A DNA stretch of 64,000 bases, taken from assembly GCF_032062105.1 (NCBI RefSeq), contig NW_026925910.1, forward strand, positions 930,001-994,000, read 5' to 3'. The translations under genes were made by a program, and so were the position numbers. Source of the DNA: Saccostrea cucullata (taxonomy: Eukaryota). The first letter of the stretch is position 1. Each line of letters begins with the position of its first letter. Below the pieces are notes generated by a model, which was not told the DNA's origin, made no database searches, and was given only the letters and a program-made list of their open reading frames with translations. Shown here piece by piece: positions 22,601-29,000 of this stretch.

Positions 22601-25407
22601 TGACGTCTTCTTCTAGTTGAGAGCAGACTAAAAGAAATGATTAATTTTCAGTTAATTTTGACATATCCCAAATAGACTGTGAATAAACATTTTGTTGTCT
22701 GTACGAAAACTAAAACACAAATTTTAACACTAAATAATCATATGAATACAAAATTTTGCTTTCTTTGCGGCATCTTTCGGGCGAAATTTGTATTTATTCA
22801 AATTGTGACTAATGGGGTCTACGAGATGGGTCGTTTTGCAGAAAAATCTCATTTTAAATCTCAGTGAAACATTTGCAGGCCCGCCAGTTAAACTCGGGGA
22901 TCGCACTCTCTTAATTACGGCATTTAAGTCCCATGGGAACCTCTCTATAACGTTACCAAGCTTCACTCATTTTCCGGCGCATTCTCAGTTAAAATAAATC
23001 AATTTTCACATTCAGATCTTCTTCAATTTTAGTTGCCATAGAAACGAATTCCTTGATTCCCTGAAGGAATACTTTATTTGGTTAGAGATGATAATGGTCG
23101 TTGGAAGTGTACTATGCCAATTTTTTTATTCGTAAACTTTGGTCGTTTTATTTGAATAATGGTGTATTTCATATGAATGAATAAGCATGATGAGTGTAAT
23201 ACGAGAAATAAAAGTCTAATACTGTTTCAAAGGGGGTTGTTGATATGATTCATCAGAAATTTTTAGATTACTTTTATTTTGTTTTTATATCTTTGTCAAT
23301 AAGATACATCCACAATCTTTCAACAGTGGGAGGAATGAAAATATCTACCCACAAATGTATTTTTATCTTTTATAATATATTGCATATATAGCATGTTACA
23401 CGTATTATTGAGGGTTTAAAACGTATTATTTTCAGAAACAAACATGATATACGCAAATACAATTGTCGCTGTTAATTCGTGAAAAAATACAGTAAATCAG
23501 TAATAATAGTTTTAATATGATTACTTTTTTCATTCTAGAAAGAAGACATTTTTATAACCCCTATTTAAGACCTACAATGGTTATATAAGTTTAAGTGGGA
23601 AGACAGAATAAAGTTTGAATGAAATCAATTAAAACTGTTTCTATTCTAATGATGAATCATATTTGCAAAACTCTTAATTGTTTAGCCTATAATCAAAAGG
23701 GGTGAATCCCTTTCTGAAATCTAAACGTAACTTGAAAATGTAAGGTACTTTCAAAACTTTATCTTTTTTCACTCATCGAGACAAAGAATCCAGAACAATA
23801 TATCAAAGACATTAGCATGAAATATCTATGTGAAGCTTTTTAAGATATTTTTTTAAATATATATATGTATGAGCTTTCATATAATCAGAATTTATAAATT
23901 TTGGTATGACTAAGTGAAAAGTTGTATTAAAGTAGCATTTCTGTTGTGTGTTTGATCCGAATTTTACCTAATTGACCTAACTGAATTTTTGTTATTTACA
24001 AGTAGGGAGAGGGCGTTATAAGTTTTGAGAACTTGTGCCTAATCCCTTTGTAATTAGAAATTACAATAAAATATGTACAAACCATCTGAATTTTATTTCA
24101 ACATACTACTTAAAATTCAAGATACGAAGTAAATGTCCAAAGTTAAAAGATTTTAGGTTCAAATTCAGGATTGTAAAAATAATAATAATATCTAATGTTC
24201 TAGGTTAATAATGTAAATGTATTTTAGATTTTCAGGATAGAGGCTACTTCCAAGACAAAAACCTACATTGGCTACATTGGACCATAGAAGTCATGTATAA
24301 ATATTATGGAAGAAAACTTGCTTTCGTTGCTGACGGCGAAACTGTCCGATAGGTCCGTTGTCCTGTTGATGAATGTAAAACTTCTCGGTGAATGATATTT
24401 ATTGAAGACTGGAATCGCATCTACTGAGTCATGGTCGAATATTATACCTGGAGGAAATTAATTCACATGATAAGAAGTACATGGTTAAAATGTTTAAACA
24501 ATATATTGAAGTAAAAAATAAGTGCATTAAAAAAAATTAAATGATTCTGAAAGAGTTTAAAGGTATTGAATGCAGTTTGATGCTCTTTGCATACCGTATT
24601 CAATATAATTAGTAGTGACTAATGCAAATAGGCAGATTTTTCAGTCAAAGAAATTATACCAAAACTTTCATGTAATGAGATACATTTATCTTTTATTCAA
24701 ATTAGAAATCAGAATGAAAATAAGGTATTAATCAATTCTGTGTAATATAAGCATGTATGAAAATTACATATTTCTGGGGATTCCTTAAATTTGCGAAAAA
24801 TTAAATAGTTTGAATGCTTTTGTCATTTTAAAAACTGCAACAGAAAAGATTAAGCAAATAATATAGTTTCATCGTCAAGACCAAATGTGAAAAGTATGTA
24901 ATATTTACTCAATATATGTAAGTCTTGCAAGAAAGAGGTTTCTTTTTGCAGTGCAGCATTTAAACAAGAAAATCTCGAGTGTTTCTGGTCGCAGTGAGGT
25001 ACAATTACAATAGAACCTCAGCATAACCGATCAATAGAATTCTGCACCCAAATTGGAGCTATGAGGTTTCTCTTGTGAACTAAGCAATTACACTTCCTAT
25101 CTTGTAGAACTTAGGAGGATCAATAAAGTGAAACGTTCGGCTCAGAGAGGCGCTAACTCCATTACGAATTATTTGGCGAACATTGCTGAGTATTTGCTTT
25201 ACGTGTGTCAATAGTGATAGGTTCTCCTTAATTTATTAGCTAATGAGAGACCATTACATTTTATATTGGCCAAAAAACTTGTTCGTTGCTTTTTGTAGAT
25301 ATAATTCCTTTATTTGCAGATTTACACTTACCAAATTTGACACCGCTTACTCCAGATAACCATAACAACTGCAAAAGTACTATTGATGAAGACATCCACA
25401 TTCTCAT
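16686..25407 (-). CDS. Gene B: AMPA-type ionotropic glutamate receptor subunit (GluA/GRIA-like), complete, 17 exons, ~897 aa
   Basis: Exons (minus): 25407-25332 (signal peptide [19 protein letters not shown]), 24447-24322 (GC donor), 22627-22376, 21965-21769, 21604-21551, 21438-21313, 21080-20907, 20597-20490, 20371-20243, 20061-19825, 19739-19396 ([10 protein letters not shown]), 19278-19080 (SYTANLAAF), 18870-18626, 17880-17772, 17620-17483 (M4), 17290-17186 (KARLSFRG), 16760-16686 (YTYPGP...THTQV*). Sum 2694 nt with no internal stops. From memory, the tail resembles that of the Lymnaea glutamate receptor; not verified. Confidence 0.94.
18106..18398 (+). mobile_element. Full-length tRNA-derived SINE with Deu/Nin-like core, in intron 13 of gene B
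   Basis: Pol III A box TGGCGCAGTGG (18116), B box GGTTCGAATCC (18179), core ggatgagaccatataaaccgaggtc...aaagatccc, (AATC)n tail, and a perfect 12-bp target-site duplication TCGAAAATGCAA at 18094-18105 and 18399-18410. Confidence 0.9.
22102..22324. mobile_element. Tc1/mariner/pogo-type MITE
   Basis: TIR CTGTAAACCAATTTTTATT / AATAAAAGTTGGTTTACAG, TA TSD, internal cgcgaa repeats. Confidence 0.75.
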
Positions 25408-26017: not shown

Positions 26018-29000
26018 ATGAAGCTAGCATTAGCCTTTTCTGGGTATCTTTTTACACTTCTCACTCATCTTATGGAATCAAGTGGACAAACAAACCTAGT
26101 TAAAATAGGTAAGTATATATATTTATTCATTTTTTTACTTTGATGCTCATTTCTAGCAGGGTTTTTAATCAAAGACAAGTTTTATTTTTTACAAAATGAA
26201 TGAGTAAGATCCTTTTGTAATTACTCTAAATTTTCATTGATGATTCAGCCTCAATTTGAAATGTAGATATCTTTATATTTAGTTCCTATGATATGAAGAC
26301 TTTCGTTCTGAGATGGCAATATTAATAATTCCTCTATTACAGTACAAGTAGACTTTCTGGACGATGTCATATTGAGAAAAAATAATACTCACCAACAAGC
26401 CAACTCATACACACAGTCAGTTTTATATCGATTTCCACTCCACTTCAAATAAATTTATTTACATTTAAGCCCAACAAAATAACCAGTATATTTGGTAGCG
26501 AGGATTCGATTTGGATTCTCCAGGGCCGATAGTTATAGCTATGCTTGAAATAACTCAGAACTTGTTTTGTGCTTTTTCAAAGCATGGGAGAGCTATTTAT
26601 AAAATCTAGATTGGGTGACATAACTTAGCACTTTTTGCAAATGTAGCTTGTATCATGAGAAAATATTAAAGCCATTAGGCACTAATACTATGCATATAAT
26701 AAGTTTAGGCACTATTACTATGCATATACTAAGTTTAGGCACAAATCCTATGCATATAATAAGTTTGGATAGCAATTTGTTTTATGGCAATTAAAAAAAA
26801 ATGTTTTCAATTATCTTACAAAAAAATCAAAGCTGGCTTCGTGAACTATATTTTGTGTATTTATAATGGTAAAATCACAAGCCATAAACATGCAAATTAA
26901 GAAATATTATTATTGAAAAAATCTCATAATTTGAAATGGAATTATACAGTATTCGAGCTCAAAAGTCCATTAAACAACACAAGTTTGAGCATAGCAATGA
27001 TTACTATGACCTCTATTACATGTTCTTTTTGCAAAACGCACAGTTCAACACTTTGAGTACTCTTTACAGACAATACAAAAATATTCTTTCAGGGTTCATA
27101 ATTCATCAGGACTATGAGGACTCTACAAAGTTATGGAGCGCAATTCAATACAAGATGAGGAAAATGGGAGATTCGACAGACAGGTCCTGGGTTCAAATAC
27201 AAGCATTAGAAGGGACCGATAACAGTTTTGACACTGAGGACATCGTTAAGCTTCATCAAGAGGGTGCGTATTGAATGCAGGAATAACTGAATTATAGTTA
27301 AGATAAACTTCTCATTTAGTTTACATTATTAGTTCAAGTAGAGAAAAAACTCACCCACTGATTTTTCTTTTATCGTTTTTTTTAATACAATAAAAAGTTG
27401 GAATTTTTTACTTCGTGAACAATTAATTGAGATAACGGACAATAATCAAAGTAGAACGTCCGTTGATACAATGCAAATTGGGAGCAGAGAAAACGCGGAC
27501 TACCTGATATATCAGAGGTGAGATCAGGTGCCATGGAAGAATTAGCATCCCCTGTCGACCGGTCACACCAACCTTTTGTTGTGATGAAATTTATAAATGA
27601 CCTTGTAGCAATACTGAAACGAAGGCAAAGCCAAGTCATTAAAAACTATAGAGTGATCCAACAATATATGTTTATCCTTACTATCTATGAATAATCAGGT
27701 TTTTTTCTTCTTAAGGTATCACACCGGTAATTGTTTTCACTATATAATTCTATATAGCATAAAAAATCGTTAAAAATCAGGTATTTGTTTACATGAAAAA
27801 ATATTTAGCAGGAGGTGTTAAACATTACCTGTCACATTAGTTGACACCAAAAAACAGGGTACCCACACGGCATTTTCGGACTTTTTCCATCTGCAAACAG
27901 GGCTACCCTCAAATCCACGTGTTTTCACTTTGTTTATAAACACCTCGAGTGCATCACAGGAAGTAGCCTCCTATGCCCTGAAAAAAATAGTTCCTGTCAA
28001 AAACCTTTATTTATTCACAAAGTACATAAAATTTACTAGGCACAGGTACCAAAGTTGTAAAAATGGCTTGGAAGAAAATAGAAAAACGCCTCAAAAGAAA
28101 AGAAAAATAATTTTATATGTATGGACCTACATTTGACTAAGTTCATTTTGATTGGTCAATTACCGGTGTGATACCTTGAAGTGAAGTTCCCGTTTTTATA
28201 TTTAAAAATAATTTAATTTCATTTGTATCAAGCAATTTCATTGGCTGAATCATTCAGAGGAACATATAACATTTTGTATAACATAACTTGCCTACGTCAC
28301 AATGAGTTACGTCAAAAACGTATTACTCCGCTTGACGTTGCTTTTAAAATATAGCTCAATTTGAAGCCTTTTTCCGGAGGAAATATTGTCTCATTGTCTA
28401 CACTCAAATTAAATTATAAGGAATGAAGCTAATTTCAACTTATGTTTTCCGATATAACAAAACTTGGGGCAGTTTACGCTTTCTTATAAACCGCTTCGCG
28501 GTTTATAAAGCGTAAACTGCCCCAAGTTATGTTATATCGGATAACATAAGTTGAAATAAGCTTCATTCCTTAAAAAAAACAACCTTCATTTGGCTTTTGC
28601 TTGTTCACTTGTCTCCTCATCAAAATCTAGCAAACTGTACTTCAAATGTATTTAATGTCTGTAATTTATTTAATCCTGGTAATGCAAAACTTCAATCTTT
28701 ACTTCTAATTGTTTAAATACTCGTAAGGCAGACCCTACTTTTCAGTTTGTAAAAAGGTTGCTGAAGGAGCACAAGCGCTGGTGTTTGTTGGAACAGCCAA
28801 GTCAACGGCGGAAATGAACTCAATAGCAGAAAGAATCTCTGTCCCAGTCCTTATGCCTTTGTCTACAAAAAATTCCAAAACAACAAGCGAATTTGTTGTT
28901 TCCTTAAAACCGTCCCTGAACAAGCCAATCATAGAAGTCATCAAGAAGAATGGCTGGAATCGAGTCTTTTATCTTTTCGACTCTGAGGAAGGTTTGAAAT

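Follow-up and report, generated by a model that had tools for sequence, protein, structure and literature searches.

Two ionotropic glutamate receptor (iGluR) genes of the oyster Saccostrea cucullata, called B and C here, lie head-to-head with a short spacer between their start codons. Does this spacer serve as a promoter for both genes, and does the arrangement couple two subunits of one channel? The window, i.e. the whole stretch of 64,000 nucleotides (nt) that was analysed, corresponds to G000:C8047:930001-994000 in the AT-rich 1.17-Gb assembly of this species, and positions below are those of the window unless a contig is named. The B/C spacer is probably a bidirectional promoter in an operational sense, defined here as start sites on opposite strands less than 1 kb apart. 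A first-pass annotation of the same DNA had gone further and had proposed a shared promoter coupling the subunits of a heteromeric channel. The structural half of that proposal held, as the B messenger fills 359 of the 610 spacer bases, whereas no evidence was obtained for the functional half.

Genes were located using a six-frame table of open frames and an all-against-all comparison, and all similarity searches were performed exon by exon. Three paralogous iGluR genes (A, B and C) were found in the window by these means. The ATG of B is at 25407 on the minus strand and that of C at 26018 on the plus strand, leaving 610 bp between them (25408-26017); the head-to-head layout, the coordinates of both signal-peptide exons and the 610-bp distance given by the first-pass annotation proved exact on reading of the sequence. 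Nothing lies between the two divergent, opposite-strand genes, which is the geometry of a bidirectional pair. No upstream ATG (uATG) of the spacer opens a frame of more than 35 amino acids, and Rfam returned 0 matches in the window at the gathering threshold. RNA data came from three raw oligo-dT runs (X11-X13, with 1.6-1.9 billion letters read per run) and from one run available as contigs (X1), all from unnamed tissues. The features of the pair are as follows.

17468-25766, minus strand: gene B, minimum span; AMPA-type iGluR according to its exon pieces, Pfam and best PDB matches to GluA1-4.
24322-24447, minus strand: B exon 2, start of the amino-terminal domain (ATD); piece 24322-24444 of X1 contig record 1, with the cut shifted by +3; GC-type donor GCAAGT.
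25332-25407, minus strand: coding part of B exon 1; signal peptide, 25 codons + G, donor GTAAGT; splice to exon 2 confirmed by RNA.
25408-25766, minus strand: B 5' untranslated region (UTR), minimum extent; 359 nt, unspliced, with 8 uATGs, from X1 contig record 1.
25767-26017, no strand assigned: remaining spacer; 251 bp, TATA-less, with CCAAT and minimal upstream open reading frames (uORFs); putative promoter function.
26018-39854, plus strand: gene C, minimum span; AMPA-type iGluR according to its exon pieces, Pfam, colinearity with K1P1B8 and best PDB matches to GluA1-4.
26018-26108, plus strand: C coding exon 1, predicted; signal peptide-like, 30 codons + G, donor GTAAGT; in-frame stop at 26000-26002.
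27093-27263, plus strand: C exon 2, predicted; acceptor tttcag, donor G|GTGCGT, phase 1; second half aligned with K1P1B8 residues 1-34 at 56% identity.
28746-28991, plus strand: C exon 3 (ATD); X1 contig record 7 on 28745-28966; 68-70% identity to three oyster-type fragments.

A further C-terminal exon is probably present in both genes, beyond the 17468 end of B and past 39854 in C.

The 5' end of B was read from X1 contig record 1 (3162 nt, depth 26.1). In this contig 24447 was joined to 25332 over a gap of 884 nt, bounded by CT..AC, i.e. GT..AG on the minus strand (with the same +3 shift of the cut). The contig was colinear with 25329-25766 and ended at 25766, which places at least 359 nt of B 5' UTR within the spacer. 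No intron interrupts this UTR over the 359 nt. Its 8 uATGs are unremarkable, since about 7 are expected by chance from a rough base-composition estimate. The contig end does not coincide with a minus-strand acceptor, because the plus strand reads GT, not CT, at 25767-25768. One X12 read pair was also placed inside 25400-25799. Since the B transcript reaches at least 25766, at most 251 bp (25767-26017) are left before the ATG of C. With the 5' end of B at or beyond 25766, start sites would be at most 251 bp apart, or the transcripts would overlap, if C starts within the spacer.

Two further observations were made on this part of B. The donor of intron 2 is apparently of the GC type (GCAAGT at 24316-24321, minus strand), as read from the X1 contig leaving exon 2 at 24322. 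The X1 contig and the reference showed 13 listed differences in the 101 bases 25369-25469, 8 of them within the 76-nt signal-peptide exon. Elsewhere, one listed difference was seen in 25470-25766 and one in 123 nt of exon 2; four more in the piece are unlisted. The stretch 25369-25469 seems either to be hypervariable or to derive, in X1, from a diverged lineage or allele.

Transcription of C was detected further downstream. X1 contig record 7 (280 nt, depth 9.7) fell on 28745-28966, in C exon 3, and its left edge suits the predicted phase-1 acceptor at 28745|28746. C is thus transcribed, in the same run as B. Exon 1 and the transcription start of C are predictions. Both first exons end with G|GTAAGT in phase 1, one base into a Gly codon. 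These ends are at equivalent protein positions (...VKF-G in B, ...VKI-G in C), and in both genes exon 2 opens the ATD with (I/F)I(F/H). The ATG of C has a G at -3 and is followed by a hydrophobic core. Two overlapping minimal uORFs (ATGTGA at 25997 and 26002, together 25997-26007) were noticed 11-21 nt 5' of this ATG, the first being in frame with it.

A protein search of representative sequences with C exon 3 gave 18 matches, three of them close (68-70% identity), including K1P1B8 of Magallana gigas. K1P1B8 is colinear with seven successive C pieces over 27164-32840 (C exons 2-9), and its KLHQS-VC junction matches the predicted junction of C exons 2 and 3 (KLHQE-VC). A follow-up search with the K1P1B8 sequence returned itself and one Nucella protein at 29% only. 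K1P1B8 provides no test of C exon 1, since its model has no N-terminus.

In the RNA data both genes were present among the X1 contigs and silent in X11-X13; four runs are too few for a correlation. In X11-X13 almost no reads fell on B or C, except repeat-derived ones at 26800-27000 and 27400-28600 (C introns 1 and 2). C intron 2 contains an element resembling a miniature inverted-repeat transposable element (MITE) with perfect 21-nt terminal inverted repeats (27713-28177) and a 69-nt hairpin with 94% complementarity (28414-28575). Coverage of both was heavy in all four runs, and the many loose ends show that the reads derive from copies elsewhere. C intron 1 contains a 30-nt unit in three tandem copies that are 94% identical (26675-26766).

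The spacer is single-copy: a search of the 1.17-Gb assembly gave 1 candidate and 1 match, the spacer itself. The same search returned 2514 candidates for the repeat of B intron 3, and this positive control indicates that it can detect repeats. Within 23000-29000, two direct repeat families and three inverted pairs were found, none of which touches 25332-26108. When 25332-26108 was compared by blastn with 134 kb of the cluster, the best other match had E = 0.30, so no similarity to a paralogous promoter was seen there. The earlier description of a spacer with no recognisable repeat was therefore upheld. Its description of the surroundings as rich in transposable elements needs a qualification: both flanking first introns are almost clean. 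B intron 1 (24460-25320) is single-copy, and so is C intron 1 except for a repeat fragment of about 55 bp near 26946-26998. As both first introns are nearly single-copy, the clean zone is about 2.5 kb long, wider than the spacer.

The spacer has a GC content of 34%, and its observed/expected (o/e) CpG ratio of 0.83 compares with 0.74 in the window. The ratio rises to 1.26 at 25600-25899, which corresponds to the 94th-96th percentile of 300-bp windows. Two CCAAT boxes were read on the minus strand, one inside the 251 bp (25807-25803) and one straddling its left edge into the B 5' UTR (25767-25763). An internal promoter was also considered in B intron 3, where 22100-22330 is CpG-rich (o/e about 2.2) with TCGCGA-like motifs. 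It was rejected, since this sequence of about 230 bp is repeated many times in the genome (at least 2514 candidate copies at about 88-90% identity).

On these grounds the following arrangement is proposed. An old inversion or inverted duplication within a tandem array would have brought the 5' ends of B and C together. The core promoter of B would lie to the right of 25766, with the ATG exon of C at most 251 bp further on. Both core promoters would then sit in a single-copy, TATA-less and repeat-free stretch. They would abut or overlap there, given a B start at or beyond 25766 and a C ATG at most 251 bp on, unless transcription of C begins at a remote non-coding exon. Nearby enhancers, those in the clean first introns included, would reach both genes, which would tend to be on in the same neurons.

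Several observations weigh against this promoter reading. The known 5' end of B is the end of a contig and not a mapped cap site. No read or contig fell on 26000-26199 or 27000-27399, i.e. on C exon 1 or exon 2, in any of the four runs (4/4). The remaining 58 nt of X1 record 7 could not be placed on the predicted C exon 2 at 95% likeness; this piece may simply have missed the threshold, since the divergence of the X1 animal from the reference is 3.6% for C exon 3 and about 10% for B exon 1. All three close relatives of C exon 3 are fragments with no signal peptide, K1P1B8 beginning inside exon 2. X11-X13 gave neither start-site pile-ups nor correlation data. In the spacer itself no TATA consensus was found, the CCAAT boxes may be due to chance in AT-rich DNA, and the central CpG enrichment, a weak point, is modest and forms no CpG island.

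Other species were approached through two metagenome scans, in which contigs of further oysters were sought. One gave 550 pattern matches with 0 relatives, the other 437 pattern matches with two non-orthologous loci (25-27% identity).

The nature of the two genes was examined on their exons. Ten exon pieces of B and C were submitted to Pfam; eight were matched, by ANF_receptor, Lig_chan-Glu_bd and Lig_chan, which follow one another along the exons as expected, and two S2 exons had no match. PF10613 and PF00060 were above their cutoffs in both genes. PF01094 passed in B exon 3 (37.3 bits), whereas C exon 3 gave E = 3.7e-05 and 23.4 bits, below the 25.4-bit cutoff. Every conserved exon of C is an open frame, with Pfam matches outside S2. 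In the PDB, the best 60 of 330 matches of the S1-M1 exon of B and the best 60 of 333 for C were glutamate receptor 1-4 chains, a few of those listed being titled just 'Glutamate receptor' (best E = 4.5e-47 for B and 8.8e-45 for C). B and C thus appear to be AMPA-type receptors by best match of this one exon. Both keep, by eye from the translations, the glutamate-binding Arg in S1 and Glu in S2, SYTANLAAF and the Q of the Q/R site; these residues presumably have in B and C the roles that they have in GluA2. The pore loop reads MQQG in both, and LVESPKNDY was read in C.

B and C are old relatives. Their identity per exon is 22-65%, against 37-87% for A and B, in agreement with the earlier statement that B and C are the most dissimilar complete genes of the window. 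In ATD exon 3, identity is 22% between B and C and 68-70% between C and its oyster orthologues. B and C therefore diverged well before the lineage of K1P1B8 branched off. This low identity, and the lack of any inverted repeat across the spacer, agree with the first-pass view that the pair is not a recent inverted duplication. B and C are best described as anciently diverged paralogues of apparent AMPA type.

The third gene of the window is a neighbour of B.

About 620-13364, minus strand: gene A, approximate span; 5' exons read from open frames; close tandem paralogue of B.

Two more AMPA-type genes lie on the same contig outside the window: Z (minus strand, about 917.8-924 kb) and E (plus strand, about 1002.8-1012.7 kb). 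The cluster on C8047 (917800-1012700) is thus Z- A- B- | C+ E+, and its sole strand switch is at the B/C spacer. A search of the genome with the S1-M1 exon gave 28 matches. Five contigs carry at least two of them, yielding 12 adjacent pairs, of which nine are tandem, two are tail-to-tail and one, B|C, is head-to-head; this count uses the position of one exon and disregards unrelated genes lying between. A second group of five AMPA-type genes was seen on C8543 in the orientation + + + + -. Additional AMPA-like matches were found on C10522 and C9978; the C9978 match scores equal to E and is perhaps a haplotig. The pore loop reads MLQG in E (L005:7426-7788) and in the C10522 gene (L008:206-556), against MQQG in A, B, C and Z. 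The Leu of MLQG falls at the position that we take to be the Q/R site, and it may be a pore-selectivity variant.

A tree was built from 18 of the 28 S1-M1 matches, i.e. from one exon of 120 amino acids (C9978, C3416, C18963, C8708, C6200, C128:296935, C11712, C20583:246742, C9105 and C16122 were omitted). It grouped A with B (99/99), C with Z (92/87) and E with the C10522 gene (90/91). An origin of the cluster as two monophyletic arms was considered and found unsupported, since C and Z, which group in the tree, lie on opposite sides of the strand switch. If the C-Z grouping holds, the junction would result from a rearrangement inside an older array and not from the expansion of an ancestral divergent pair. 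One exon of 120 amino acids is thin support for this, and the tree is not clearly matched by the identities of the remaining exons.

Other explanations of the locus were weighed against a spacer acting as a bidirectional promoter. It is unlikely, if still worth considering, that B and C are overlapping and independent genes. C would then have a non-coding first exon to the left of 25766, maybe in the introns of B, that would be spliced to the AG at 26014-26015. In that case the genes would have a 5' antisense overlap and separate promoters, and the 610-bp spacing would be uninformative on co-regulation. The 5' end of C is unmapped, the AG belongs to a CAG (26013-26015) that stands 2 nt before the C ATG and about 20 nt after a T-run, and the in-frame stop and the two mini-uORFs 5' of this ATG suit UTR sequence. 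The first-pass annotation had itself warned of a 5' UTR intron at this AG, and the caveat stands but is weak. The AG is a poor acceptor, with a pyrimidine fraction of 0.41 over -20..-4, at the 23rd percentile of 6350 AGs of the window, whereas the three supported acceptors have 0.53-0.65. The paralogue B, moreover, has a 5' UTR with no intron in 359 nt. No contig or read joint led into 26016 either, which is a weak argument as C coverage there is nil. A misprediction of C exon 1, or a C gene that is 5'-truncated or decaying, would mean that no true functional head-to-head pair exists. The lack of RNA on C exons 1 and 2 and a K1P1B8 model that begins within exon 2 leave room for this idea, which is nonetheless very improbable: exon 1 has the G at -3 and a hydrophobic core and shares the ...(V/I)K(F/I)G phase-1 end and the GTAAGT donor with the RNA-confirmed exon 1 of B, the conserved C exons are all open with Pfam matches outside S2, and exon 3 is transcribed with a left edge that fits the phase-1 junction.

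The proposal of the first-pass annotation in its full form, one shared promoter maintained by selection since B and C are heteromeric partner subunits, as in COL4A1/COL4A2 or H2A/H2B, is doubtful and was rated quite improbable. It draws on the head-to-head geometry with 610 bp between the ATGs, on the presence of both genes in X1 (depths 26.1 and 9.7) and their silence in X11-X13, and on an old B/C split after which both genes are nevertheless intact. In the available text of the GABA-A report, a head-to-head layout of alpha and beta genes is likewise a conserved feature of the receptor clusters (PMC1934366). However, any pair of neuronal genes would be expected to be found in one run and missing from three. 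All ligand-binding and pore residues checked by eye are intact in both B and C, so neither looks partner-dependent. A, the close relative of B (81% identity over the S1-M1 exon), lacks a divergent partner, and the S1-M1 tree (one exon) places C with Z (92/87), with no paired history with B. The notion that the arrangement supplies two obligate partners of one channel finds no support. The reading retained here is that of an operationally bidirectional promoter, with the start of C, the sharing of elements and co-regulation as its predicted parts.

Head-to-head gene pairs are common, and the B/C pair is a structural annotation, i.e. a fresh example of a familiar gene organisation and no new principle. 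COL4A1/COL4A2 and H2A/H2B are divergent pairs with a short shared promoter, for which co-assembly and shared elements were established experimentally. B and C resemble them as divergent paralogous or partner genes; for B/C, co-assembly and shared elements would have to be supposed. In human, mouse and rat, according to the part of the survey that was available, start sites of most bidirectional pairs are 1-400 bp apart and the partners tend to be co-expressed and related in function (PMC1487180). Compared with what this part of the survey describes, B and C are likewise divergent with no gene between, and their spacing would be in the dominant class if C starts within the spacer. They differ by a GC content of 34%, a modest CpG enrichment with no island and one start site that is predicted only. 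The B/C partners are also tissue-specific neuronal paralogues and not housekeeping genes.

Another parallel is offered by the GABA-A receptor clusters, in which, in the text available, the conserved head-to-head arrangement of alpha and beta genes was proposed to serve the coordinate expression of partners (PMC1934366). The likeness, within the same text, is that of clustered subunit genes of ligand-gated channels with one strand switch. These receptors belong to the Cys-loop pentameric superfamily, and their clusters span 500-700 kb in the part of the report consulted (PMC1934366), against 610 bp here. GABA-A alpha and beta subunits are known obligate partners and their layout is conserved across paralogous clusters; for B and C both points would have to be supposed.

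In a search of an open-access collection, none of the papers listed reported a head-to-head or divergent iGluR pair. Lineage-specific duplication of protostome AMPA-type genes is described in the available part of PMC5225553, where neither 'tandem', 'adjacent', 'scaffold' or 'gene cluster' nor any gene orientation or head-to-head pair appears. A Crassostrea gigas survey placed 5/12 iGluR genes on chromosome 7, again as far as its accessible text goes (PMC10642201). That text contains neither 'adjacent' nor 'orientation' and no head-to-head pair, and the gene positions in its supplement may bear on this point. The available part of PMC13722416 has nothing on gene arrangement.

If the spacer drives both genes, it would be a small and delimited neuronal bidirectional promoter in a mollusc, 610 bp in length with at most 251 bp outside the B UTR. 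It would also hint at a likely subunit pairing among the bivalve lineage-specific AMPA-type genes. The physiology of these genes is, to our knowledge, almost unknown. Should the promoter prove to be kept for two partner subunits, for which the chances appear slim, the layout of GABA-A alpha/beta or COL4A1/A2 would have its first counterpart among iGluRs. B and C would then form a compact natural two-gene cassette for the study of invertebrate AMPA-type heteromers.

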